A stretch of 63,318 nucleotides of DNA, the filler included, from Octopus bimaculoides (Eukaryota): the NCBI RefSeq assembly GCF_001194135.2. It is 8 parts of 8 records of this genome, joined end to end, with 100 filler letters (N's around TTAATTAATTAA, not from the genome) between each part and the next. Parts side by side here need not be neighbours in the genome. Positions count along the whole stretch, not along the records: positions 29,230 to 55,240 come from NC_068994.1; 7 more parts are not named here. The stretch is one strand, 5' to 3'. Under the pieces are notes generated by a model. That model ran no database searches. It was not told the DNA's origin and was given only the letters and a program-made list of their open reading frames with translations. Every line of letters begins with the position of its first letter. The first letter of the stretch is position 1. Positions 7,504-54,725 of this stretch are shown one piece after another. A program made the position numbers and the translations under genes.

Positions 7504-9509
7504 ANNNNNNNNNNNNNNNNNNNNNNNNNNNNNNNNNNNNNNNNNNNNNNNNNNNNNNNNNNNNNNNNNNNNNNNNNNNNNNNNNNNNNNNNNNNNNNNN
7601 NNNNNNNNNNNNNNNNNNNNNNNNNNNNNNNNNNNNNNNNNNNNNNNNNNNNNNNNNNNNNNNNNNNNNNNNNNNNNNNNNNNNNNNNNNNNNNNNNNNN
7701 NNNNNNNNNNNNNNNNNNNNNNNNNNNNNNNNNNNNNNNNNNNNNNNNNNNNNNNNNNNNNNNNNNNNNNNNNNNNNNNNNNNNNNNNNNNNNNNNNNNN
7801 NNNNNNNNNNNNNNNNNNNNNNNNNNNNNNNNNNNNNNNNNNNNNNNNNNNNNNNNNNNGCCCGGGGCAACTGTAGCAGAAGCCATGCAGTGGGACTGAA
7901 CCCGAGCTATGAATTGATTACATCTACCATAATCTATCATTAAAAAAAAAGAAAAGGAAAAGAAGTCTCATTTTGCAATAATTCCAAACATATTTTGATT
8001 TTAGATTAATTCATCACATACGCACGCGCACATGTGCGCGCGACGAATTTCCTCTATGAGTTAATTTCCCAAATCATTTTTCTGTTACATCGTCAAATTA
8101 TCCTACTTTAAGATAATTTCTTCAAATTATAGAGAGCCAAATCTTGAAAGATGAGTGGGATACGACGCATCGGCTGCTCGAATGATTGTCAGCTATCCCA
8201 TTCTATCTATCATCTGTGTTTCAAATGAAAATTTTACACCAACAAGAAAACTGCGGCTAAGCAGCATGGTAGTGGTGTCAGACGTGACATGCAGACCATC
8301 ATATAGTTTGCTTCACATGGCGTTTTTATTCTTCGCTTCCGTTTTACGAGTTCAGTGTGCATATGCGCATTGCGAGTTCATTCTTCTTTTACTGGTTCCA
8401 ACTCAAAACTCTTTACAGATCACAACCATCTCATGAACTGCGTTCGTAAGGAGCGCCTCGTGCTCCAATGTTTGTGAAAAAATCAGTTCACTGGAAAGTT
8501 AACATCAAACTACGCCGCCTATTCACCACAAGGTCCAGTTCTTGTGGTGTGATGGCTTGTGTGCCTCAATGACTTCGAGAGCTATTCTAACGGAACTCAG
8601 GCTCCTGGTAGAAACTTCCATGCTGGACAGATAAAAGAATAGAGGCCGGACTAATAGAGGCCTCTCCGCAAAGTAGAAAATAGAAAATTACAGAAGACTC
8701 GGTGACAAATCAAAGCAACAAAACCTGGGAGAGGAAGAAAAGAGAGCTCAGAGTCGGTGACAGAGAAGGACAGTCGTCAATGAATTCGGTTCCATGAGGA
8801 GAGAAGAGCTTCAGTAAGAAACAGCGCGTGTACTTTATTATTTTGTTTTTAAATTANNNNNNNNNNTAAAAAAAAAAAAAAAAAAAGACAAAAAACGTAC
8901 GCATCAATAAATGACCTGAAATTTAGGGTCTAAATTCTATTATTTGTTAAAGCTCATTAAAGTCAGCTTAACCCCTTAAGCCTTTGACAAGAAGTTTAGC
9001 CTTGTTGGTTAGTCAGAAATTATTAGCCAACGTTTACAGAAAGAGCAGTCTTCTTCGGACAAGGTTGAGGAAATAAAGGAAAAGATAAATCTCGACAGGA
9101 AGTAATCATTAAAGTTGATTATTTTTTTCTCATATCTACAGGTGTAATTTAGTTAATTAAACATTTTTGTTGCATTCAGTTATGTTAATCGGCTTCGTAT
9201 AGAGATATGTTCTTTATGCAGAAGAAAACTTAGTGAAAAATTTTCCCATTCGTTATTTGAAATTACCTAATCTGTGGAAGCCCTCAGCATCTTTATTCTC
9301 TCATTTGTACGGATCTTCGTGATGCTGAGGATGTCCAATAACTGAGGAACATATTCTAGGTCATCACCCTACTTTCCAAAGAGAAGACTCATTGTAAGAT
9401 TCCAATCAATGTTTAAATGAATATAGATCTCAGAGTTTGTCTTTCTTTGACAAGAATTATTCATTAAAGCAAAAGATTTTACTTCGTATATGCGCAATTT
9501 TGATTAACC

Positions 9510-30539: not shown

Positions 30540-33500
30540 TTAAAATATTCGTATGATAAAGTTAGTGAAGATAATCTAATGATACAACCAGATCAAGGTC
30601 GCAATGTTAGCAATGTCAGAAAATAATCAGGTATAGTGTATGCGTGTATATATACATACATATACATACATGTACATATATATATATATATATATANNNN
30701 NNNNNNNNNNNNNNNNNNNNNNNNNNNNNNNNNNNNNNNNNNNNNNNNNNNNNNNNNNNNNNNNNNNNNNNNNNNNNNNNNNNNNNNNNNNNNNNNNNNN
30801 NNNNNNNNNNNNNNNNNNNNNNNNNNNNNNNNNNNNNNNNNNNNNNNNNNNNNNNNNNNNNNNNNNNNNNNNNNNNNNNNNNNNNNNNNNNNNNNNNNNN
30901 NNNNNNNNNNNNNNNNNNNNNNNNNNNNNNNNNNNNNNNNNNNNNNNNNNNNNNNNNNNNNNNNNNNNNNNNNNNNNNNNNNNNNNNNNNNNNNNNNNNN
31001 NNNNNNNNNNNNNNNNNNNNNNNNNNNNNNNNNNNNNNNNNNNNNNNNNNNNNNNNNNNNNNNNNNNNNNNNNNNNNNNNNNNNNNNNNNNNNNNNNNNN
31101 NNNNNNNNNNNNNNNNNNNNNNNNNNNNNNNNNNNNNNNNNNNNNNNNNNNNNNNNNNNNNNNNNNNNNNNNNNNNNNNNNNNNNNNNNNNNNNNNNNNN
31201 NNNNNNNNNNNNNNNNNNNNNNNNNNNNNNNNNNNNNNNNNNNNNNNNNNNNNNNNNNNNNNNNNNNNNNNNNNNNNNNNNNNNNNNNNNNNNNNNNNNN
31301 NNNNNNNNNNNNNNNNNNNNNNNNNNNNNNNNNNNNNNNNNNNNNNNNNNNNNNNNNNNNNNNNNNNNNNNNNNNNNNNNNNNNNNNNNNNNNNNNNNNN
31401 NNNNNNNNNNNNNNNNNNNNNNNNNNNNNNNNNNNNNNNNNNNNNNNNNNNNNNNNNNNNNNNNNNNNNNNNNNNNNNNNNNNNNNNNNNNNNNNNNNNN
31501 NNNNNNNNNNNNNNNNNNNNNNNNNNNNNNNNNNNNNNNNNNNNNNNNNNNNNNNNNNNNNNNNNNNNNNNNNNNNNNNNNNNNNNNNNNNNNNNNNNNN
31601 NNNNNNNNNNNNNNNNNNNNNNNNNNNNNNNNNNNNNNNNNNNNNNNNNNNNNNNNNNNNNNNNNNNNNNNNNNNNNAACTGTTATTAATCAAAGTAAAA
31701 TGTAATCCCAATGTGATAAGGGTCAGCATTCATCCCCCAGTGAAGGGCTCTGCCTGAAACAATATACTTAAAAAAAAACAAAGAGCACACCAGCAGCATA
31801 CTTATATTTTTGTGGGTTTTCTTTTAGCTTTTTAATATATTTTCTGTGGGTTTTTTTATTATTATTAATTAATGCATTAACGGTTTGGACAGGAACATCT
31901 GATAGGCGCAAGTTTAGCACACGTGAAAATGAAAAATAATAAAAAAATTTTAATTATATAAAAAAAAAAAAAACGAAAACGAAAGTAAGATTTTCTTCTG
32001 TAGAGAAGGGCATTGCCCTTCTTGAAAGGACACAGATTAAAATTTTTATTTTATGACATTATGGGGTTGGCAGGTGTGATAGGCAGCTGAGAGATTCTGC
32101 TCAATAGCGATTGATAACATCAACAAATATAACATACTGTATCATAAGCCATACATCTGCCTCACTATAGCTGGTTGTTATACATTATTAATATTATTGA
32201 TATTATTACTATTTTTGATGGCGATGGCGAGAGTGGTGGTGACATATCACTAACTCTGAATTCCATGTCTCAATGAAGCTGATATCACTTTTTCCATCTC
32301 CGACTTGCGAGGTTTAGCAATAAGCATCAACAATATACAGAAAGGAATTTATACATACGCATGTGTATATTATGTATGTGAGTGTAAATTTGTTTGTTTT
32401 TTTCGTTTTTATGACACTTTATTTTCCCATACTAATACGGATGAGACATACCGAGGCATTGTTTTACAGCTGGATGTCCTTCCTGTCACTAACCCTTCCT
32501 TTTGTTTTCCTTTTCACAAGTAACGGATCTCTCATTTCCCACGTCTTTGGAAGCATGACGTGAGCAGATCATTTGAGACCTGACAACAACAACAATAACA
32601 ACACCACTCACAGTGAACAACTTTCATAGGAGGCAAATGAAATCACAGATGTACACATATATCTATGTGTGAGTGACTTTGTGTTTCACTTGCATACACT
32701 TCACGTTTTGGTCCGATGCATGGTCAACATCAGATTACTACGAATGAGAATATTTGAAAAGATATTCTTATACCTCACTGTAAGGGAAAGACATGAGAGA
32801 TGCCATAAAACATAGCTTTCCCTTCACTTATAACTCCAGCCTTCACGCTCAAATAAAAAAGAAACAAGTTTTGACCCCCAAAAAATAGATTCCATAAATA
32901 ACTTCTATGTGTGATATTGGCAACATTAATTTCAAGTCGCAGAGCAAATAGGAAAGCTACTGAATGAGAAAACAACATTTCTTTTACTATCAAAATAAAA
33001 AGTGACTTTCTTACCTAAAATGAGAATTGTTGAATACAAGGCCAGAAATCTGAGGGAAGGGGAGCAGTCAATTATATCAAGTGTAGTACTTCATTAGTAC
33101 TTTATTTTATTGACCCAAGAGGGCGAGGAAATGAAAGATTCTAATATAAGCAAAACAAATTATACATAAATAGATTTTTATTTAAATTGCCATACATGTA
33201 AATTAGATTTCATAAAATCTTTAAAATTGAATATCTATTTATATATTTAATCGAACTAAGATTTTGGTCACAATCCAAGTCTCAAGCACACATTTTATAT
33301 ACATTGAAAATTTAGCAAGAAACTCAGTTCTTGCTACTGCCTCAAGTCGTCCGTAATTGTGATTCTATGAACTTGTACCACAATACTGTCAGGATTTCCC
33401 TCAACTAACACTCCATGTTAACAGCATCTTTTAGTGACACCTTCATATTTTAGTTATGTCCCTAAATCTTAGAACAGGATAATATCCTCCATCAAGATGT

Positions 33501-36500
33501 GGTCACCACAGCTTCAATGCCAATCAAACGAAGCTCAAGCAAAACTGAGCCACAGAGTACATCTCTTCATATTCTCTTCACTGGATGAACAACCAGTTAC
33601 TGATCAAGGGCCTTAACCCTTCCTTCTTTTTTCCTTCTCCACTACGAGTCTAAACACATTTATATACACAAACTGGAATATGTCAAATGCTGTTACATAA
33701 CGTTTAACTAATCAACACTATGCATCCTTTTAGTTAATACAACACCATAGTTTTCGTGTTTATACAGGTGTGTATTTTTGAATACACTTCACTTACACTG
33801 GCCTTACTGAGAATCAAAACGGAATTGAAGATTGTATCCGTTCTTATAGTGGCCGTGTATTTTCTTTTAATTTCACATTTTTAACCCTAAAATTTTCTTC
33901 ATTGGAAATTCACTCAGACAAAGTAATTCAGTCCATACATTGTAGAGTGTAATCTTTAATTGTGAGATGTTTTAGTGCTTTTAACCACTTCGTAACAGCA
34001 ACCCTTGCACAATAGGCCTGCCTTCTGCAGAAAGATCTGGCAGTGTAAATCCAACAACAAAGAATTAAACACTTCAAACTCCCAGAACAGAACCTAAAGG
34101 ATCACTTTCACAAAGGGTCTAATCTGCTAGCCACCTCGATACCCTAGCTGTCTTGGAGCAGAGGTGGCTAAAGTTACATAACAACAAAATTAAAGCTTCC
34201 AAATGGAGGTACTGGGTATACAAATGCATTCCTAGAATATAAGACATGTCATCCAACTATGTACTATAGTATCAGCCGACTCCATACTATAGTAGGTGCT
34301 GGACCTGTATCATAATAGGTATCTCTGTATATGCAGTATCCTAATACAGTCTGTTTGAATAAATCAAGGTCATAAACTACTTAAAAAATGTTTTTAAAAA
34401 ACCCTGAAAATTGCAAAACTGTCTTCATGTAACGGGGTCTGTTAGATATTGAGCTCATTTTTAACATTTTATTCAGAAAATTCTGTTTTTCGTTAGCAAT
34501 TCTAGAACTGTCTGCAGACAAATTAATTATATATATGAAACAATCTTCAGACAATGAATGATGGACACTGCAGCATTTTTCGAATGCCTAAGCCAGAAAG
34601 TACTATGTTACAGGAATTATACGAGCAGAATTGATCGTAACAAAGCAATAATATGATTGCTTCTTAACAATAGCTCAACTTGTTACACTTGCTTCTAAAT
34701 CTCTCTCAGCCAGAAAGTTCTGTGTTAGACAACAAAAGCAGAACAGTAGCACAATTATAATATAATCTTAGGAATAGTTAAAACCAACAAATAAATGATG
34801 TTGGAGCATTGATTATCACTAAAAAAAAAAAACGTCTTTCTTGCCTATCTCTTTCAATAAACGAATAAGTATACGAATCATAACAATTTCACCATAACAT
34901 AGTAGTACTCATTACTGAAACACATGTATAACTCATGGAATTTATGATTTCATAATCAAATAACTTAAACTAACTCTTGTTTTATTCTATACTAAATACG
35001 GTTTTNNNNNNNNNNNNNNNNNNNNNNNNNNNNNNNNNNNNNNNNNNNNNNNNNNNNNNNNNNNNNNNNNNNNNNNNNNNNNNNNNNNNNNNNNNNNNNN
35101 NNNNNNNNNNNNNNNNNNNNNNNNNNNNNNNNNNNNNNNNNNNNNNNNNNNNNNNNNNNNNNNNNNNNNNNNNNNNNNNNNNNNNNNNNNNGAACTTATA
35201 TATTTTTTAATATTTTAATTAAATTAATTTATTTATTTGTTTTAATAATTGATAATAATAATGATTAAAAATAATAAGTAGGAGTGGGGATTGATGAACT
35301 TTGAGAACAATTCATTGTATAATTTCTATCTTCAAAGTTTAATAATAATAATAATAATATTTTTAAAATAAAACAATCAAACAATGGAACAAACTAGAAC
35401 AAAACAAAATAAAACAAACAAATTGAAAAGAAAAAGAGGAACAAAAAAAACAAAAGAACAAAGAGAAAAATCGGTTGAAAATTAAAACAAAAAAGGGCAG
35501 ACAAATATCAAATATAAAATAATTTAAAATAATAATGACAAAAATTAAAAATAAAATAAAATTTAAAAAAACAATACAATGATAAGCATGAATCAATTTT
35601 CATTTTAGTTTTCTTCTTTTTTCTTTCTTTGTCTCAGTCTCCTTTCTTTCTTTCTCTCTTTCTCTTTCTTTCTCTCTCTCTCTCTCACTTACTCTCTGTG
35701 TCTGTCTTTAAATCTCAGAAACAAGGTTTCGAGCCATTCTGAAATTCTTGCAACAATAAATTTCGAAGCCAATTAATAACTTGGGCCAATTACCGATTCT
35801 GTATGTGTAGCAGAGGAAGGGGGATGGGGGAATGGGAAGATAATAGATGAAGAAGGAGAGGGGGACGGGCCAAAAAAGAGGAAAAAATTAAAATCCACAA
35901 ATATATTCATAGATGTGTTAGACGTTCTCTCACATATGGACACAGAGGTGTGTGGTGATGGGGAATACAATCAACCATATCCGAATTTCACATATATATT
36001 TACACACACACACAAATAACCCCCTCCCCCCACACACACATGCATACGCACTTTTTCCTAATTTCTTTAGAGGAAAAATAAAAATATATATATATAAAAA
36101 TCATATAAATGGCTAATTAATAATATTTTTACACTGGCATTTTTCAAACTTTAAAATCGATGTCATACAGTCTATTAATATATATACATACATACATACA
36201 TAAGCTAGAAGGCTACTAGTTGTTGCTTTTAGTCCCTTGGTCAACACTGAGTGGACCTTATGATCAAAGACTTTCCAGCAGTGACCATCACGTCAATTTT
36301 TAATTTTTATGTTATCAAACTGTGTATCGAGAACTACATTATCCAAAGACGGTTGGGTGGGATTTAAGGGAGACTTGGCTGCTATTTCTAGCAGGTCATG
36401 CGACCACCTAAAGGCTCTGTCTTTGGCTCTCATTATTTACTTTAGTATTTTTTTTTGTTTGTTTTCTTTTTATTGTAAAAATCAGCATCAGAAAATGTTT

Positions 36501-37166: not shown

Positions 37167-37575
37167 CTGCGGAACTCAAAAATACCCAATATTATTTTGC
37201 TAAATTTATAGATTTCTTGGGTTTTTTTAGTTTTGGTTCCTTTATAACTACAGATACAAGCTAACCCCCCCCCCCAACTATTCGCCAAAAATTAATTTAT
37301 AGTATTTATCTTAACATTACATATTTTAAAAATTAATAAGAGTTTGTTAATTTAAAACTTGCCATAGGGAAAATCTGTACTGNNNNNNNNNNNNNNNNNN
37401 NNNNNNNNNNNNNNNNNNNNNNNNNNNNNNNNNNNNNNNNNNNNNNNNNNNNNNNNNNNNNNNNNNNNNNNNNNNNNNNNNNNNNNNNNNNNNNNNNNNN
37501 NNNNNNNNNNNNNNNNNNNNNNNNNNNNNNNNNNNNNNNNNNNNNNNNNNNNNNNNNNNNNNNNNNNNNNNNNNN

Positions 37576-37726: not shown

Positions 37727-39316
37727 CACACTCACTCATCACACATATGCATTTATACACACAATAATTGGTTCTCCATGTTTTCCAAACTAACAGCAAA
37801 TAACAGCAATTGAAAAAAATGTCTGCATTTTACAATATTTTCAATGATGATACTGAAAAGGATTATAATTATTATTATTATTATCATTATCATTATTACA
37901 ATTACTGCTATCGTCATCATCATCGTAATAATCATCATCATCATCATAATCATCGTCATCGTCATCATCATCATCAATACTGTTGCTGTTTAAAAAAAAA
38001 ACAAAAACAAATTCCCCCATACAAAATATTTTAGTTATTTTTGTATTTTGTTTTTCCTTTCTTTTGTTGTTTGATTTTTGTTGTTTTGTCGTTAATTCCA
38101 TTAATTTCAAATTTTTTCTTTTTTCCTTTTTTGTCAAAGCAATGAGATGGAATACGGACAAAAGACCGTATTGTTTTAATTTAAAATAATGATTATTAAT
38201 CATTATTTGTTTCCTTATGTATTTTTTGTTTTCGAGGTTTGTTCAATGTCAAAATAGTAATAATAATAATAATAATAATTGTTATCATTATCATTATTTT
38301 TATTATATTAACATCATTAAAAAAAAAAAAAATTAGGGTGGTATTTAATATTTCAGCACGTGTTGAGCCATAATCCATTAACTGGAATGGGTATTTGGTA
38401 AGTTACGATGTTTGTTCGGTATAGGTTTACCTGTTCATTTCCAGCATCAAATGTGAGTGTGTATGCACATGTGTGTGCGTATATACTTCATATATATATA
38501 NNNNNNNNNNNNNNNNNNNNNNNNNNNNNNNNNNNNNNNNNNNNNNNNNNNNNNNNNNNNNNNNNNNNNNNNNNNNNNNNNNNNNNNNNNNNNNNNNNNN
38601 NNNNNNNNNNNNNNNNNNNNNNNNNNNNNNNNNNNNNNNNNNNNNNNNNNNNNNNNNNNNNNNNNNNNNNNNNNNNNNNNNNNNNNNNNNNNNNNNNNNN
38701 NNNNNNNNNNNNNNNNNNNNNNNNNNNNNNNNNNNNNNNNNNNNNNNNNNNNNNNNNNNNNNNNNNNNNNNNNNNNNNNNNNNNNNNNNNNNNNNNNNNN
38801 NNNNNNNNNNNNNNNNNNNNNNNNNNNNNNNNNNNNNNNNNNNNNNNNNNNNNNNNNNNNNNNNNNNNNNNNNNNNNNNNNNNNNNNNNNNNNNNNNNNN
38901 NNNNNNNNNNNNNNNNNNNNNNNNNNNNNNNNNNNNNNNNNNNNNNNNNNNNNNNNNNNNNNNNNNNNNNNNNNNNNNNNNNNNNNNNNNNNNNNNNNNN
39001 NNNNNNNNNNNNNATTTGGTCATTATCATAACCATACTGTTGTAGCAGTTGTTTTTTGTTGGAGGAGGTTAGAATTTGCTAGTTCGATTCAAGGTTTGGA
39101 GGAACAAAGAAGTGATACGCATCAAATCACTTAAAGGTTCCCTGCTCCTTGCTTGGAATTAATGACAAGAGTTGCCTGTTTTGCAAACATCGATGCATGG
39201 AATTATCAAAGATAAGGAAAGACTTAATAAATCTGGCATTTAGATTTTTTTTTTCTTTTTTCTCTTTTCATGTCTGAAGCAAATTTTTAGCTTGAAAATC
39301 TCATTGGTGTATTACT

Positions 39317-40582
39317 TCATGCACTGGTTTCGAGTGCTGATTGAAACTTGGGTTGCATAACAGCTGTTGGTATACTACTTTGCATGCTTGTCTGCAGGCT
39401 AGGCTGAAGAGTGTTCTGCAGGCTAGGCTGAAGAGTGGTCTGCAGGCTAGGCTGCATGCTAGGCTGCATAGTAGACTGCATGCTAGGCTGCAAACTGGTC
39501 TGCATACCTGTCTGCAAGCTCTGAATGGGCTGCATTGCCTGGATAACCTGGACTGGCTGCCGCTGTGGTTGGCCTTTGCTTGGAGTGGGCTGGGGAGGAT
39601 GGTAGGGAGGAGGCGGGTAGTCGTCGAAGATGTATGTCGTATGCGTTCGGTGCTCTTTGGCGAGGGTCGCGTGCGTACGCAGGCTGTGGTGGCGTTCTGC
39701 TGTCGATGCAGCCTGTGCACTGATGCTTTCATAGCTTCTTCTTTCCGGGATCACCTCATAGTAGTTCTCCGAACTTGACTGCGAGTAGTCGGCCTGCTCG
39801 CGGTCAGAGAGCGAATGGTTCACGTAGAATATGTCATGGGTCATAGTTGCTTGGCTCGAGGTTACTGAGCCACTTGTTTTACGCCGGACAGCTACGCACC
39901 ACAATGAGAAGAAAAGAACAGCCAAAATCAACATCACGCCGGACACAACACCAAAAATAACAGCATAAAGGTTTGTACCATTGTTCTGTTTGGGAGGAAT
40001 ATAAGTCTTGGAGAAAGACAGGGCATCTTCTTCACAGGTTCCATAGAATCCTGTAATATTAAAGAAATAGTTTAAGTTTAAGTGGGTTTTAGAACTACAA
40101 CGACTTATAGCAAAATACCAGGTTCGGGCACCAGTTGATCGAAATGTCCGTTCGCCAATACACACATAAATTGATTTACCTGTTTCGTTCGATATTTTAC
40201 AACCTACAGATTTGTGATTCCCCGTGTAGAGGGGTATAATTTGGTTATTATCTGCAGGTAAAATACGTTCCCTTTCTGAACACGACATTTTGTCGTTGAG
40301 TGTACGCAACTGGTCGTCATAATAAATCAGCAGGTTTGCACAGCATTCACTGACCGGGTACCATAACTGGTACTGAATTTTTGCCATGTCTCTGTGGAAT
40401 GTCTTTTGAATTAAATAGCCGTACCACGGCAAACGAGTGTAGATGCACCCCTTGACGATGCAAGGCGGTTGCTGAGCATTAGCCAGTCCAAGAACACAGA
40501 CAATCAGCACAAACAGATCAATGTAGAACGGTCGAGAAAAAGAAATGGTAAACGCTAATGGTTTTTCTTTATTTACTGCCAT
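39317..40582 (-). CDS. Type I single-pass membrane protein (421 aa) with a TMEM145/GPR180-like N-terminal ectodomain and a Tyr/Pro/Gln-rich cytoplasmic tail
   Basis: Long uninterrupted ORF with Kozak AAACATGG at 40582 and a signal peptide ending ANA|QQ. The motifs YPVSECCANLLIYYDD, NNQIIPL and RTFRS..RTWYFAISRC resemble TMEM145 YPEAKCCQNILLYFDD, NNQVINL and RSFRS..RWWYIALSKC. One hydrophobic helix is followed by RRK. A splice acceptor TTTTATTTGTCAG| at 40638 implies an upstream exon. Confidence 0.88.
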   Translation of the reverse strand: MAVNKEKPLAFTISFSRPFYIDLFVLIVCVLGLANAQQPPCIVKGCIYTRLPWYGYLIQKTFHRDMAKIQYQLWYPVSECCANLLIYYDDQLRTLNDKMSCSERERILPADNNQIIPLYTGNHKSVGCKISNETGKSIYVCIGERTFRSTGARTWYFAISRCSSKTHLNLNYFFNITGFYGTCEEDALSFSKTYIPPKQNNGTNLYAVIFGVVSGVMLILAVLFFSLWCVAVRRKTSGSVTSSQATMTHDIFYVNHSLSDREQADYSQSSSENYYEVIPERRSYESISAQAASTAERHHSLRTHATLAKEHRTHTTYIFDDYPPPPYHPPQPTPSKGQPQRQPVQVIQAMQPIQSLQTGMQTSLQPSMQSTMQPSMQPSLQTTLQPSLQNTLQPSLQTSMQSSIPTAVMQPKFQSALETSA

Positions 40583-41391
40583 GTTTGCTGCAATATCGGT
40601 TTTTATGATTCTAATAAATTCTTCGGTGTTTTTCCTTTCTGACAAATAAAATATGTTTCCAAGTTTGAAAAATTCCTTGTTTAGATTGGATTTGGTTTAA
40701 TTTAGTTTGAAGAAGGTTTGTTGGCAAGTTTGGATTTTAATGTTTTTTTTTTATTTTTCCCCTCTTTGACTCCTAGTAAAAAAACCAAGTTTCCTTGAAG
40801 AATTAGTAATTAATAATATCCATTTAGGTATAATTGGTAAAAATGGTAAATAAAATCTGTACTCCACGTGGTTCCTTTTGAGATGGGTAAATCCTTTTGA
40901 GGCTCTGAATATTAGGAAATGGTGAGGCAGAGATTGAAAGCAACACAGAATCAGTCACATTGCGATATTCAGCAACTACAAATTGAAACTTTTTGGATAG
41001 CTAAAATACAAGAAAGCAACTTGCTCCGAACCCTATGAATATAAATATATATATACCTTAGCCCTTAATGAACCTAGTGTTTTTATGGTGTGTTAAACAA
41101 AAGAGAAAGGGAAAAATAATATATGAATTTAAAATAATATATAAAGTTTATAGATAAGTGTTTGTGTTATATAGACAGTGTCATATAGACATGTGTATGT
41201 GTGTATGCATGTATGTATGTTTGAGTGTATACAAAGAAATACAAAAGAATAGGACTACATTTCTGCAAAATATAAACTTAAAAAATGGAAAAAAAAAAAA
41301 TCCTCCACAAAAACAATCGAAAATGACAAAAGACTTTCTGGGTTTTTTTTTCAAATCTTAAATTTCATTGCATCAAACACACACATATATG

Positions 41392-41465
<74 letters not shown>

Positions 41466-41480
41466 TTATATATATGTGTG

Positions 41481-41513
<33 letters not shown>

Positions 41514-41526
41514 ATGTGTGGGAGTG

Positions 41527-41574
<48 letters not shown>

Positions 41575-41765
41575 TTATATATATATATTATATATACATA
41601 TATAGTGTATGTGTGTGTATGTATGTATGTATGGGAATGCCTGATGCTTTTGTGTATGTGTGTGTATATGTGTGTGAGTGGATGTGTCTAAATGTGTGGA
41701 TGGATATAGAGGAAAAGAAAGACGAAAAATGTAGCAAATGGAATCCTTAAGCCGTTATTTCACAG

Positions 41766-45001: not shown

Positions 45002-48000
45002 TGTGTGTGCGTGTGTGTGTTCTGTGTTATGCTAAGACGCAGTGTGTAATATCAGAATTTTGAACTTGAGTCAAATATATAAAAAATTATGGCAAATCGT
45101 TGTTAGAAAAATATTTTAACTGAGGAAGGTCTTATGTAATGGATGCATCTCGTATTATATATTATTACACACCTGAAACATGTTACTACGCCTGATCAAG
45201 TATCACAGAAGCATTAAACTATTATTAGTTCTCTTGGTTGTGTATTTAAATTGATAATTGTCTCTCACAGTTCAGAGTACATTTTTTTTTTGTTGATTCT
45301 ACTTCAATTGGATTTTTAAACTATTCCCTTCTCCCTTAGCCCCTATGCCCTCTTCAACTCCTCCCCTTCCCTACTATGTGATCGCTGTCCAGTTCAGGCA
45401 TTGTCGTCCTTTTTCTGGCTGGCTGGCTGCCTTTGAGGTCAGTCACAGCTGTTCTGTCCTGTCCTGCCACCCAGTCTCTTAAGATTTTTCCATTTCCATT
45501 TTCCTTGCACCAGCTTACTACCATTGTTTTCCTTTTGTTGTATAACCAAAACGTGTTTGCCCATTCTATATTCTATAATTCTATATATAGTCATGCAAAT
45601 CGACTCCAGAACTTATGATTCTTAGTTTGGTACTTCTTCCGTGGCTATCTTGCCAAACCATGAAGTCACAAAGACATCCATCTGTCGCTAAGTTCTGAGT
45701 TCAAATTCCACCAAGGTCTGACTTTGCCTTTCATTCTTTCAGGGTCAACAGATAATACGTACCAGTTGGACACGGAAGGGGGGGGGGTAACAAATGACTA
45801 GTACCCTCCACCAAAATTCCAGGCCTTATAACAGAATGAATTATTCGCATGAATGCCAGTTATATTGGTAAGATGGTTAACATTGGGTTTGCAGACTGGA
45901 TTATGCACCAGAGAAGGTTCTGCCTTTTGGCAGCTTAGTTTCTCAACCTTGTAACATGGTTCCCCCTTTTAATTATGGTAATTTCATTCTGATTAAGTGT
46001 AGTGTACGATTTCCTTTCTTACATCAGATTATGTTCCGGCATTCCTGGTTTAATGTATTCTCAGGAATGTCTACCAAGAAATAAAAAAATCAAACAAAAA
46101 ATCCTTTACAACAAAATTATATAAAGAAAGAAAGAAAGAAAGAAAGGAGGNNNNNNNNNNNNNNNNNNNNNNNNNNNNNNNNNNNNNNNNNNNNNNNNNN
46201 NNNNNNNNNNNNNNNNNNNNNNNNNNNNNNNNNNNNNNNNNNNNNNNNNNNNNNNNNNNNNNNNNNNNNNNNNNNNNNNNNNNNNNNNNNNNNNNNNNNN
46301 NNNNNNNNNNNNNNNNNNNNNNNNNNNNNNNNNNNNNNNNNNNNNNNNNNNNNNNNNNNNNNNNNNNNNNNNNNNNNNNNNNNNNNNNNNNNNNNNNNNN
46401 NNNNNNNNNNNNNNNNNNNNNNNNNNNNNNNNNNNNNNNNNNNNNNNNNNNNNNNNNNNNNNNNNNNNNNNNNNNNNNNNNNNNNNNNNNNNNNNNNNNN
46501 NNNNNNNNNNNNNNNNNNNNNNNNNNNNNNNNNNNNNNNNNNNNNNNNNNNNNNNNNNNNNNNNNNNNNNNNNNNNNNNNNNNNNNNNNNNNNNNNNNNN
46601 NNNNNNNNNNNNNNNNNNNNNNNNNNNNNNNNNNNNNNNNNNNNNNNNNNNNNNNNNNNNNNNNNNNNNNNNNNNNNNNNNNNNNTTTGCTTTCAATGGG
46701 TCTTAAAAAGCTTTTTTCCTGAAACAATAAAACCAGGAATGTAACGATGGTTTTTGCAAATTAATTATATATTAAATGACATTTGGATAAGTTTCTCTCC
46801 AAGGCAAAAGCATGTGGAATGGTGGTGTGCTTAAGAAACTTGCTTCCCGACCATGTGTTCTTGAGTTCAGTCCCAATGAGCAGCACCTTGTGCCAATCAA
46901 AACCTTGTGATAGATCTGGCAGATGCTAACGATTCTGCCAGCTCGCCACCTTTTAAATGGTTTATCTTAAAGAATAAGGGCTCTCTCAGCTGGAGTCGGT
47001 AGACTCTGACTCCAGCTATCCCTTAATTGTTTCTGACTCTGACTCCACAACGCCAACTCTGACTCCCCGACTCTGACTTCATAGTCCTGGTTAGTGCCAC
47101 TATAGATTGCACCCAGTGGCCTCTGTGAAATCGTTGGTGAATGGAGATAACGTTTGAGATAAAGGACGTTTCAGTGTTGCCAAGAACGTGACAAACTTTC
47201 TGGTGCCGGTGCCAAAATAAAATGCACCCAGTGCACTCTAGAAAGGTGTTGGTGTCAGGAAGGGAATGGAACTATAGAAATCCTGGTAGAAATGGAATCC
47301 AGGAGTGAGATACCATACCAATATATCAAGGATGTGACAGATTCAAGATGTGACAGTTAAAAGGAAGCTTGAAGCCATTGTAGTAGAAGTAGGAAAGGTA
47401 GAGAGAGTATACACAGCACATTTATGAGTCAGAGGTAGATGTGTGTTGGTGAATGCTTCATCAGAGCAATTCTTAGCATAGAGCAAAATTCAATAATTCA
47501 TATTAACCTCTGCCACAGTAAAAAGAAGTGCTTCATATACACATGTGTACATATTAGTATGTGTATACCTACATATATATGTGTGTGTGTATGTATGTGT
47601 GTGTATGTATGTGTGTATATGAATATGCGTATATATATGAATATATATATGTATATATGTATATATAAATATGTATATATGTGTGTTTGTGTGTGTGCAT
47701 GTATATATATATATGTGTGTGTGTGTATATATATATGTATATATGTGTATATATATATATATGTATATGTGTGTATATGTACGCATATATATGTATATAT
47801 ATATGTGTATATATATAAATAAGTATATATGGGCATGTGAGTGTATGTATATATATATTAGATGCTATCATCTCTTTAACAGATTAATTACCACACTATT
47901 GGAAGAATATTCACTTTATTTGTTTTACGTCAATTATTTGTTTCTTTCATGTCAATTTAATATTTCATTTTATTGTATGTTTTACTTATCGACCACTTCT

Positions 48001-48650: not shown

Positions 48651-50829
48651 GAAACATTGGCACAGTTGTCTCCCTCTTCCATCTTTGCACACATACATCG
48701 CAATTCAGAAAGGAAACTAACATTGATACAGTTATCTCCTCCTCCACCTATACACACATATATCGCAATTTAAAGAAAAAAAATAATAACGCTAGTCATA
48801 AAACTAATGGTATTTTCCTTTTACCGTCATATCTGATCTTCATTTCAGTTTATAATATTATTCCGAACATTAAAATTTCGGCTTTTTAATGTTTAAACTA
48901 TAAACAAACCTTTCATCTATGTAACGTCCTAATTACCATACAGATGGTGTCTCGTAAAAAAAGACGGAAAATAATTTGACCTTTCAGAGTTATTCCGGTT
49001 TTTTTTTGTTTTTTTTTTTTCCTTTTCTCAATGCCAACAAACATACATTTTAGTAAATTTACTTGATAATTTGATCGCCAATATTTCACTAAATTACATG
49101 TGGGACTGCATTTCTGCTGAGCAACTCCAGCACCATGAAATACGATAGAGTCATTTCACATAATTGCCAATGTAATTGAAACGAAAAGCAAAAGACAGTA
49201 GGCCATTAACTTNNNNNNNNNNNNNNNNNNNNNNNNNNNNNNNNNNNNNNNNNNNNNNNNNNNNNNNNNNNNNNNNNNNNNNNNNNNNNNNNNNNNNNNN
49301 NNNNNNNNNNNNNNNNNNNNNNNNNNNNNNNNNNNNNNNNNNNNNNNNNNNNNNNNNNNNNNNNNNNNNNNNNNNNNNNNNNNNNNNNNNNNNNNNNNNN
49401 NNNNNNNNNNNNNNNNNNNNNNNNNNNNNNNNNNNNNNNNNNNNNNNNNNNNNNNNNNNNNNNNNNNNNNNNNNNNNNNNNNNNNNNNNNNNNNNNNNNN
49501 NNNNNNNNNNNNNNNNNNNNNNNNNNNNNNNNNNNNNNNNNNNNNNNNNNNNNNNNNNNNNNNNNNNNNNNNNNNNNNNNNNNNNNNNNNNNNNNNNNNN
49601 NNNNNNNNNNNNNNNNNNNNNNNNNNNNNNNNNNNNNNNNNNNNNNNNNNNNNNNNNNNNNNNNNNNNNNNNNNNNNNNNNNNNNNNNNNNNNNNNNNNN
49701 NNNNNNNNNNNNNNNNNNNNNNNNNNNNNNNNNNNNNNNNNNNNNNNNNNNNNNNNNNNNNNNNNNNNNNNNNNNNNNNNNNNNNNNNNNNNNNNNNNNN
49801 NNNNNNNNNNNNNNNNNNNNNNNNNNNNNNNNNNNNNNNNNNNNNNNNNNNNNNNNNNNNATATATCATCAGCAGCAGCAGCAGCATTTAACTTCATCAT
49901 CATCATCATTTAACATACATACATGCATGCATGCATACATATATATATTCATACATACATACATACATACATCCATACATAGACAGGTAGATAGATATAT
50001 ACATGTCCTTTCAGATTTAAACCAACCATATGTTAGGTGCAAATATATATATATTCTACCTGTTTTGTGGTCAAACTGACCAGATCCAGGCTCTCACACC
50101 TACCCTGCTGCATCATTCTAAGATTAAGACAATCACATCATTGAAATCTGAAAGCTATGAGATAATGGGGTAGTTGGTTTATAGTTGGTTTATAGTCACA
50201 AGGTTCTGAGTTCCATTCCTCATTGGTGCACGACACTTTACTTCACATTGCTCCACTCCACTCAACTGGTTAAAATGAGTAGGACCTCTATTTCAAAGCA
50301 CAAACCCTGTTGCATTCTGTGTCGTGCTGAATCTCCATGAGAACTATGTTAAGGGTACACATGTCTGTGGTGTACTCAACCACTTACATGTTAATTTCAT
50401 GAACTGGCTCTTCCATTGATTGGAACACATGGAACACTTGTCCTCATAACTAACAGAGCACCAGTTTTAAAATATTTAAAAACAAAATTATCCATGAAAC
50501 ACTCACAAGGCTTTGGTTGGCCAAGAGCTATAATAGAAGACATATGCTGAAGGTGCCACACAAAGGGACTGAACCTGAAACTGTGGTGTCACAAAGCAAA
50601 CTTCTCACCACACAGCCACAGCTGTGCCTTTCGTAGGTTTTGTTCATTTTTTTTTTTTCATTTTCCTTTATTTTTATTATTATTATTATTATTTTGTTCT
50701 CATTTTCAGTCCTTCCAACTAAGACAGAACAGAGACAGGAATGAATGAATGAATGGTTGAATATAACAAGGCCACTGACTGCTGATGTATATAATGGAGA
50801 TGTGTCCTAACAAAATATATAAACAATAG

Positions 50830-51894: not shown

Positions 51895-53113
51895 GATATT
51901 TTATTAAAGCCCAAAAACAAACTGGTCTAGGCTATCACAAGTGCCTAATGAACAGTCGTGTGAAACTCTGAGTAGCATTTTGTGAAGTTTTCTTCGGCTT
52001 TAATAAAATACAATTTTACTCACCCTTCGGCAAAAAAATATTTTAAGAATTTTGGAAAAGGTATTAACTCTACAAGACAACCCTACCATGCCCAACCAAA
52101 ACACACATAGGGTGACATATATTACAACAGTCGCTTACTTTGCTCGGAAGTGTGCACCTGTTGTCCTGAAGGGTGTCAATGTTAATACTTAATATGTTAA
52201 ACAAGACAGGGAGGGGTACATAAGGTACATGTGGACGCTGTGCAGCCACAAAGTGGGGTTAGGGAGAAGAAAAGGGGGGCAGTAAAGTGCAGAGAGCAAG
52301 CTGAGAGAAAAGTGGGAAGAGTAAACTTAATGGTGGCAATATTACTAGGAAATGTGGTCATGGAAGGAGGAGTGCCGGGAAGGGATAAAGGGCTGAGGAA
52401 GGGGGCAGGCAATGAGGAAGAGGCAATGGGATGAAAGGATGGGTGCAGTGAGTGAAACAGACAACGCTAGCCCCTTTCTTTATAATGGGGTTTAGGGAGC
52501 TTAAGGAAGGNNNNNNNNNNNNNNNNNNNNNNNNNNNNNNNNNNNNNNNNNNNNNNNNNNNNNNNNNNNNNNNNNNNNNNNNNNNNNNNNNNNNNNNNNN
52601 NNNNNNNNNNNNNNNNNNNNNNNNNNNNNNNNNNNNNNNNNNNNNNNNNNNNNNNNNNNNNNNNNNNNNNNNNNNNNNNNNNNNNNNNNNNNNNNNNNNN
52701 NNNNNNNNNNNNNNNNNNNNNNNNNNNNNNNNNNNNNNNNNNNNNNNNNNNNNNNNNNNNNNNNNNNNNNNNNNNNNNNNNNNNNNNNNNNNNNNNNNNN
52801 NNNNNNNNNNNNNNNNNNNNNNNNNNNNNNNNNNNNNNNNNNNNNNNNNNNNNNNNNNNNNNNNNNNNNNNNNNNNNNNNNNNNNNNNNNNNNNNNNNNN
52901 NNNNNNNNNNNNNNNNNNNNNNNNNNNNNNNNNNNNNNNNNNNNNNNNNNNNNNNNNNNNNNNNNNNNNNNNNNNNNNNNNNNNNNNNNNNNNNNNNNNN
53001 NNNNNNNNNNNNNNNNNNNNNNNNNNNNNNNNNNNNNNNNNNNNNNNNNNNNNNNNNNNNNNNNNNNNNNNNNNNNNNNNNNNNNNNNNNNNNNNNNNNN
53101 NNNNNNNNNNNNN

Positions 53114-54053: not shown

Positions 54054-54385
54054 TATTATTATTGTATATAACACAGATCAATAGTTGAAGAGAATAGATA
54101 TATGGTGTTATTGATTATTACACACATGCACGCACATCGTTACAGCAGCTAATTTCAAACTCATTAATTGGAAATCTACTACAGAGGCCTTAGCACTGTT
54201 GCAAAATTTAAATGGAAACATTAGCAAAAAGTATATATGTATGTATGTATGTATTCGAATTTTACAAGAAAATTTTTGATAGTGACTTCGAAGTGTAAAA
54301 ATCTTCTACTCTACAAAATACCATTGAGTAATTTTTCCGTATAATGTGAAATTGTTTTTGTATATAATCTGACATGAGAAATATT

Positions 54386-54432
<47 letters not shown>

Positions 54433-54725
54433 ATATTTGTATATGTGTTTGTTTATATATGTAGTTTTGTATATATGTGTATGTGTGTGTGTGTGCATGA
54501 GTGCATATGTGTTTGTGTTTATATGTGTGTATGTGTGTGTTGTGTGTGAGTGTGTGTGTCGTGTGTGTGTGTATGTGTGTGTGTGTATTATGTACATGCA
54601 CATACACAGAAACTGTGATAAATAAATGCTTCACACATATACATGTACATATACACAAACATACACATATATATACATAAATATATGCATATNNNNNNNN
54701 NNNNNNNNNNNNNNNNNNNNNNNNN

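Follow-up and report, generated by a model that had tools for sequence, protein, structure and literature searches.

A molluscan family of single-pass proteins with a TMEM145-type ectodomain and a conserved, motif-rich tail, described from a gene of Octopus bimaculoides

GOST proteins, which join a GOLD domain to seven transmembrane helices, comprise TMEM145, GPR180, GPR107/108, TMEM87A/B, WLS, and TMEM181. They are poorly understood, and opinions differ on whether their GOLD domains work independently or solely in combination with the seven-helix cavity. GOST proteins have been proposed to serve as trafficking chaperones, the GOLD domain of WLS contacts Wnt, and both GOST and p24 proteins are viewed as receptors for cargo or for trafficking (PMC11605061). 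In the mouse, the GOLD domain of TMEM145 alone suffices to coprecipitate stereocilin (PMC12789471). The crystal structure of the GPR180 N-terminal domain (NTD; 9FOW) shows a GOLD domain with eight strands in two sheets and small helices (PMC11605061). Here, we describe a gene of Octopus bimaculoides that encodes a TMEM145-type ectodomain on a single-pass protein, P0001. The gene occupies positions 39317 to 40582 of the window, a stretch of 63,318 nucleotides (filler included) joined from eight parts of assembly GCF_001194135.2, and lies on the 26-kb piece at positions 29230-55240 (from NC_068994.1).

We read P0001 as a surface or endosomal type I receptor or cargo adaptor and give this reading, architecture and function taken together, a probability of about 0.55. 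That it is a single-pass type I membrane protein without a seven-helix domain is close to certain. The functional part, which is drawn by analogy, falls a little short of even odds.

Single-pass architecture of the octopus protein

The reading frame of P0001 is unbroken, with 421 codons followed by TGA and a good start context (AAACATGG). An exact look-up returned the gene as one 1266-nt range on chromosome CM046614.1 of GCA_001194135.2. The features of the gene are as follows; the abbreviations CDS, ORF, and AF2 stand for coding sequence, open reading frame, and AlphaFold2, respectively.

39317..40582, minus strand: complete single-exon CDS of P0001 (ORF listing and translation)
40475..40582, minus strand: signal peptide, residues 1-36, with h-region LFVLIVCVLGL and predicted cleavage ANA/QQ (hydropathy, AF2)
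40067..40456, minus strand: TMEM145_N (PF21892) GOLD-like beta-sandwich, residues 43-172 (Pfam, full model)
39971..40066, minus strand: last part of the ectodomain plus stalk, residues 173-204, with sequons N175 and N201 and conserved C183 (alignment)
39887..39970, minus strand: single transmembrane helix, residues 205-232, followed by RRK (positive-inside; hydropathy peak of 2.83, AF2)
39812..39868, minus strand: tail motif 1, residues 239-257, SVTSSQATMTHDIFYVNHS, family consensus SVTSSQATMTQDIFYVNPS, combining clustered Ser/Thr with a YxN tyrosine motif (alignment)
39722..39775, minus strand: tail motif 2, residues 270-287, SSENYYEVIPERRSYESI, a pair of YxxI motifs with five residues between them (alignment)
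39593..39625, minus strand: tail motif 3, residues 320-330, DDYPPPPYHPP, containing PPxY (PPPPY in 74/76 relatives)
39332..39583, minus strand: Q/S/P-rich low-complexity segment, residues 334-417, of lineage-specific length and sequence
39320..39331, minus strand: C-terminal ETSA, residues 418-421, PDZ-ligand-like, family form ET[S/T]A-COOH (motif count)

PF21892 was the sole significant Pfam family in P0001, matching at E=4.4e-33 (114.8 bits, above the gathering cut-off of 28.1) over model positions 1-131 of 131. BLASTP aligned P0001 with a genuine TMEM145, that of the fish Poecilia latipinna (P0130), over 165 residues at 31% identity (E=1e-23). A preliminary description of the stretch, made from the sequence alone, had proposed a TMEM145/GPR180-type ectodomain from a set of motifs (CCxNxLxYxDD, NNQxIxL, RxFRS, and WYxAxSxC). 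Both the profile match and the alignment bear this out, with the motifs in order in the octopus/fish pairs CCANLLIYYDD/CCQNILLYFDD, NNQIIPL/NNQVINL, RTFRS/RSFRS, and WYFAISRC/WYIALSKC. At the sequence level, the ectodomain qualifies as a GOLD-type domain through its homology to the N-terminal domain of TMEM145. Eight of its nine cysteines are conserved family-wide, and F174, N175, and C183 are invariant alignment columns near its end, where the family sequon reads FN[IV][ST]. Two changes in the ectodomain are private to the octopus lineage, namely, an Arg-to-Cys replacement at residue 46 (40445-40447), which supplies the unpaired ninth cysteine, and the loss of an NxT sequon at N122.

With the family alignment, AF2 modeled residues 40-180 at a predicted local distance difference test score (pLDDT) of ~90, and the ectodomain-only model reached a pLDDT of 91 and a predicted template modeling score (pTM) of 0.86. 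The latter has eight main strands with small helices inserted after strand 4, a predicted layout that agrees with the description of 9FOW. In the structural comparison, the ectodomain model was confident, and a significant match to a solved GOLD domain did not emerge. Foldseek did align the model with the GOLD domains of SPF (1o6u), SEC14L4 (4tlg), ACBD3 (6hlw), TMED1 (7rrm), and p24gamma2 (5gu5) with probabilities of 0.5-0.99, but at TM scores of ≤0.47 and amid generic jelly rolls; 9FOW itself was absent from the top 50 matches. Searches of PDB sequences with the protein and with a 62-sequence profile found nothing relevant and no direct match to any chain, returning only low-complexity or transmembrane noise (NETO2, VAMP2, and methane clathrate binding protein). 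We use the label "GOLD-like" because of the Pfam homology to TMEM145 and the secondary-structure layout, not because of a significant structural match.

Kyte-Doolittle hydropathy analysis of P0001 gave exactly two hydrophobic segments, at approximately residues 18-37 and 205-232. The AF2 model has a helix at residues 17-33 in the signal-peptide region and places a membrane-spanning helix at residues 201-236. The N-terminal hydrophobic segment is common to the orthologues in the alignment, and the predicted signal-peptide cleavage after ANA fits the -3/-1 rule. The signal peptide, the three sequons (NET at N132, NIT at N175, and NGT at N201), the one membrane helix, and the RRK that follows it were all as first noted. 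A GPI-anchored protein was rejected for P0001 because a 189-residue tail follows the helix.

The claim that seven helices are missing also held. Even at E≤10, Pfam matched P0001 to neither PF10192, the seven-helix domain of GPR180 and TMEM145, nor the p24 domain EMP24_GP25L (PF01105). We tested this further with a seven-helix profile made from 12 canonical members. As a positive control, it picked up 40 canonical proteins (E<1e-5); in six-frame translations of positions 29230-55240 and of the 21-kb locus L001, where N runs were unreadable, it found nothing (best E=0.22). There was no sign of splicing from the ectodomain into downstream multihelix exons in the octopus or the oyster, each with a single CDS (that of the oyster orthologue is likewise unbroken, at 1698 nt), and the ETSA end is conserved.

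P0001 and TMEM145 (PF21892 plus PF10192) share a homologous N-terminal domain with its cysteine framework and motifs, a signal peptide, and an extracellular or luminal orientation. In the octopus protein, however, PF10192 is replaced by one helix and a long disordered tail, and the invariant tyrosines, PPxY, and C-terminal motif of the mollusc tail are not found in TMEM145. GPR180 belongs to the same family as TMEM145 at the Pfam clan level, and UniRef names the mollusc proteins after it, but it differs from them in its seven-helix domain. As the seven helices that define GOST proteins are missing, the mollusc protein is a relative of the GOST family and not a strict member.

The mollusc family and its relatives without seven helices

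A survey of orthologues by a homologue search over 5.8 billion proteins found 76 relatives, to which the motif counts in this work refer. Every named one is molluscan, and they cover four classes (cephalopods, many gastropods, many bivalves, and the chiton Liolophura). The closest cluster members are from O. sinensis (XP_029645299.1, "uncharacterized protein LOC115219277") and O. vulgaris (CAI9732666.1), and the decapod (Sepia-type) orthologue is 78-80% identical to the octopus protein. The relatives are 340 to 690 residues long, with PF21892 as the sole Pfam domain, present in all full-length members. The same architecture and the same C-terminus recur in about 70 independent species and assemblies. 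Compared with the decapod orthologue, the proportion of nonsynonymous differences (pN) was 0.085 for the ectodomain but 0.04 for the tail core, and the synonymous proportion (pS) was saturated (0.75-0.9) in both. Purifying selection is strong on these two regions, the tail core being the more constrained.

Database entries call these proteins "uncharacterized," "hypothetical," or "GPR180-like N-terminal domain-containing protein" (UniRef). Several public names mislead, including "transmembrane protein 145" in Elysia and Plakobranchus, "TM145-like protein" in Mya, and "rho GTPase-activating protein gacZ-like" in Biomphalaria. Full-text literature searches with the domain names, and with TMEM145 combined with mollusc terms, found no paper on the mollusc single-pass family or on this domain in a single-pass protein. 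In two bivalve-type members (P0003 and P0004; ~680 residues), the ectodomain is duplicated in tandem ahead of the same helix and tail; both copies cluster inside the bivalve clade, which suggests that the duplication is recent.

Searched exhaustively with the family profile, 1.84 billion representatives yielded 366 proteins at E≤0.001, most of them without taxon names. The tail part of the profile was matched only by the mollusc family and its fragments, and none of the top 150 matches of the exhaustive hidden Markov model search (≥65 bits) was a tail-only match outside the family. A tail-only profile search of the 5.8-billion collection, capped at 8000 candidates that were evidently taken up by low-complexity words, returned four mollusc exon fragments and missed known members, so it is uninformative beyond molluscs. 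An ectodomain profile used to seek named relatives gave just 14 short proteins; the taxon names given below for proteins without seven helices come from cluster look-ups.

The next tier of relatives (E values of 1e-58 to 1e-37; P0097-P0112 and P0114-P0128) has one or two tandem PF21892 domains, no seven-helix domain, and no tail, and ends in a short hydrophobic segment that is GPI-signal-like or a minimal transmembrane helix. Its named members are all annelid, from Dimorphilus gyrociliatus (CAD5117537.1), Paralvinella palmiformis (KAK2141031.1), and Capitella teleta (ELU03865.1). Canonical proteins with PF21892 and PF10192 score more weakly against the family profile, at about E=1e-27 or worse. 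In a neighbor-joining tree of 113 domains, which was midpoint-rooted without bootstrap and is indicative only, the canonical seven-helix proteins form one clade and the mollusc family another, nearer the groups without seven helices. The annelid proteins resemble the mollusc family in having PF21892 without PF10192 and lie nearer to it than canonical proteins do, by profile score and in the tree, but they lack the cytoplasmic tail and its motifs. Three single-domain proteins (P0102, P0251, and P0263), which match the octopus ectodomain at 45-46% identity and combine a Ser/Thr-rich stalk with a hydrophobic C-terminal end, are sister to the mollusc tail family in this tree.

The preliminary description had attributed the architecture to domain shuffling. 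The single-pass form was borne out; shuffling in molluscs proved too narrow an attribution, since annelids too have TMEM145_N without the seven-helix domain. The mollusc family has been conserved since the molluscan ancestor. Its architecture is new, its domain is known, and there is a sister diversity of forms without seven helices in annelids.

Tail motifs and competing readings of function

The cytoplasmic tail of 189 residues is predicted to be disordered (AF2 pLDDT of <50). It had been described as a ~190-residue low-complexity tail, a term that fits residues ~334-417 (the last ~88) and does not fit residues 236-333, the first ~100 of the tail, which are the most constrained part of P0001 and carry its most highly conserved motifs. 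Alignments of 20 and 62 family members revealed three near-invariant islands within an otherwise variable tail. Island 1 reads SVTSSQATMT-QD-IFYVNPSLSDRE across the family, with SVTSSQATMT and YVN[PH] each present in 76/76 relatives. Here, the octopus has private changes at two near-invariant positions (39812-39868), YVNP to YVNH and MTQD to MTHD. Island 2 reads SSENYYEVIPERRSYESIN, with ENY[YC]EVIP in 75/76 and SYESI in 71/76; the spacing from EVIP to SY is 3 residues in 72/73. Island 3 has the family form [ED]DYPPPPYQPP, and the pLDDT of the octopus region ranges from <50 to ~65.

Between PPPPY and the C-terminus, relatives have 44 to 245 residues that are unconserved in the alignment. In the octopus, this part contains a 12/24-nt tandem repeat (39381-39520; identified by Tandem Repeats Finder) inside the CDS, which encodes (S/T)(L/M)QP repeats. 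The C-terminus itself is conserved, ending in ETTA (43 relatives), ETSA (22), ETAA (2), or ETIA (1), so that 68/76 end in ET[S/T/A/I]A, and the ET[S/T]A form occurs in cephalopods, gastropods, bivalves, and a chiton; the octopus stop codon is therefore the ancestral end and not a truncation. Bivalves have an additional conserved C-terminal ending, AKLLxxAYRIQQFETTA, in 32 sequences.

Several consensus rules apply to such motifs. YxxPhi signals are read by the mu subunits of adaptor protein (AP) complexes, pYxN by the Grb2 SH2 domain, PPxY by group I WW domains, and S/T-x-Phi-COOH by class I PDZ domains. By these rules, YEVI and YESI would fit AP-complex YxxPhi sorting signals or, if phosphorylated, SH2 docking sites, and YVN would fit the Grb2/Drk SH2 consensus. 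PPPPY, with the form Pro-Pro-x-Tyr in an accessible cytosolic segment, is a candidate WW ligand; [DE]DYPPPPY would suit the WW domains of the Nedd4 family (or of the Yorkie/Kibra type), and [DE]DYPPPP is, in addition, similar to EVH1 ligands of the Ena/VASP type. The ET[S/T]A-COOH end is likewise similar to class I PDZ ligands, except for an uncommon Ala at P0.

The architecture puts the Cys-rich, N-glycosylatable PF21892 beta-sandwich on the extracellular or luminal side, led there by the signal peptide, with one helix spanning the membrane and the tail facing the cytosol. In the receptor or cargo-adaptor reading, the ectodomain would bind a secreted or membrane-associated protein ligand, which we infer because of the analogies with TMEM145-stereocilin, Wntless-Wnt, and p24/TMED-cargo binding. 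The tail would be a hub of short linear motifs setting the destination of the protein and its bound ligand. Abundance and position may be controlled by tyrosine-motif sorting, ubiquitination by WW-domain E3 ligases, and PDZ anchoring, with phosphotyrosine signaling as a possible extra output. Shisa/PRRG-type adaptors likewise combine a small Cys-rich ectodomain, one transmembrane helix, and a disordered Pro-rich PPxY tail, some with a C-terminal PDZ ligand, and regulate the trafficking and degradation of partner receptors. This likeness is a functional analogy only; the ectodomain folds are unrelated, and no homology was detected.

Several observations weigh against this reading. The octopus copy reads YVNH and not YVNP. 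An Ala at P0 is atypical of PDZ ligands, and Thr at -2 with Ala at 0 occurs in 68/76 relatives. The motif matches span few residues, and which reader domain is used cannot be told from conservation by itself. Foldseek searches of PDB with the full-length and ectodomain-only models gave no match at E≤0.001 (best values of 0.003 and 0.017). No ligand, localization, phosphorylation, or binding partner is on record for any family member. Logan contigs carrying the decapod orthologue end in microsatellites without poly(A) and could be genomic, and for this reason they were rejected as proof of transcription. Overall, the suggestion of a type I receptor or cargo adaptor, made in the preliminary description, is supported: the three results that it had named as contrary (the lack of any profile or structural match to TMEM145/GPR180, splicing into multihelix exons, and an already characterized family of the same architecture) were not encountered.

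The same tyrosines could instead belong to a phosphotyrosine receptor, immunoreceptor-like or similar to a receptor tyrosine kinase substrate, in which ligand binding would lead to phosphorylation by a Src/Syk-type kinase. YEVI and YESI would then serve as an ITAM-like (immunoreceptor tyrosine-based activation motif-like) tandem site for SH2 domains, with Grb2/Drk brought in by YVN to feed Ras-MAPK signaling. Four invariant or near-invariant tyrosines in acidic contexts, the fixed spacing of the YxxI pair (72/73), the greater constraint on the tail core than on the ectodomain, and the retention of YxN in 76/76, even where the octopus loses the next Pro, are all consistent with this proposal. 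However, a canonical ITAM (YxxL/I-x(6-8)-YxxL/I) was rejected, since the gap in YEVI-PERRS-YESI is 5, fixed in 72/73, and becomes 6 only by counting YYEV, which gives Val at +3; the arrangement is ITAM-like only. Moreover, the identical motifs fit nonphosphorylated YxxPhi sorting signals, and no kinase domain or associated kinase is on record. We consider a phosphotyrosine receptor unlikely.

An early-secretory cargo receptor that cycles between the endoplasmic reticulum and the Golgi apparatus, like the p24/TMED proteins, is a still less probable alternative. The p24 proteins have the same overall topology (type I, with a luminal GOLD-type beta-sandwich and one helix), Foldseek weakly matched TMED1 (7rrm) and p24gamma2 (5gu5), and GOST relatives are mostly Golgi localized (PMC11605061). 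On the other hand, the structural resemblance is weak, and neither sequence homology (no EMP24_GP25L match at E≤10) nor a coiled-coil stalk was found. The motif-rich mollusc tail has ~190 residues versus ~12 and is without the C-terminal KKxx/FF signals for COPI and COPII that mark the short p24 tail, and an ET[S/T]A end, PPxY, and YxxPhi are typical of post-Golgi and plasma-membrane proteins.

Finally, there is next to no chance that the gene is an artifact or a decayed, truncated TMEM145 whose seven-helix exons have disappeared, fall within assembly gaps, or are unannotated: ten N runs do occur in the piece, including the run at 38501-39013, which is 300 bp downstream of the stop codon, and some databases name relatives "transmembrane protein 145," but the architecture and C-terminus recur across about 70 species and assemblies, the in-frame stop directly follows the conserved ETSA, six-frame translations carry no seven-helix signal, the oyster orthologue is one unbroken CDS, and strong purifying selection over the entire CDS, tail included, together with the conserved C-terminus led us to reject a truncated pseudogene.

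Genomic setting and implications for GOST biology

The remainder of the 26-kb piece contains microsatellite-derived pseudo-ORFs and N runs and no second convincing coding sequence. The long pseudo-ORFs, in which Y, I, C, H, and T abound, arise from TA/CA-type microsatellites at 41360-41690, 47440-47880, and 54265-54630 and are not genes. Two ORFs overlapping the CDS, at 39301-39732 (minus strand, other frame) and 39341-39778 (plus strand), were dismissed as spurious by-products of the tandem repeat within it. The ten N runs (10 to 981 bases) are assembly gaps or masked repeats and lie at 30697-31677, 35006-35191, 37383-37575, 38501-39013, 46151-46685, 49213-49860, and 52511-53113, with shorter ones elsewhere; owing to the run at 38501-39013, the 3' untranslated region is only partly readable.

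A gene with a Kunitz_BPTI domain lies ~9 kb downstream of the Crassostrea virginica orthologue on the opposite strand (L005, 21057-21698), and no equivalent was seen in the octopus 26-kb piece. Snail and bivalve gene-call fragments (P0127, P0247, P0248, and P0161) stop exactly after ENYYEV or DIFYV and continue into unrelated sequence. These break points suggest introns in some lineages, unlike the intronless CDS of octopus and oyster.

On a broader interpretation, the mollusc and annelid forms would be an old lophotrochozoan branch carrying the GOLD domain without seven helices, and the mollusc tail would be wired directly to phosphotyrosine (Grb2/Src/Syk-type SH2), WW-E3, and PDZ machinery, making the family an unrecognized class of signaling receptors. 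We regard this as doubtful at present. If it is true, orphan GOST proteins would have in their GOLD domain an autonomous ligand sensor, and the simpler mollusc and annelid proteins would offer a tractable route to the ligand class of TMEM145 and GPR180.

The gene is a clean case for reannotation, given names such as "transmembrane protein 145" and "rho GTPase-activating protein gacZ-like." The tail yields concrete and cheap predictions on AP, WW, PDZ, and SH2 binding, and the ectodomain, modeled with confidence, is a small bait for ligand screens. For researchers working on GOST proteins and lophotrochozoan receptors, the mollusc family is a useful lead, a natural experiment in which a TMEM145-type domain is used as a portable module.

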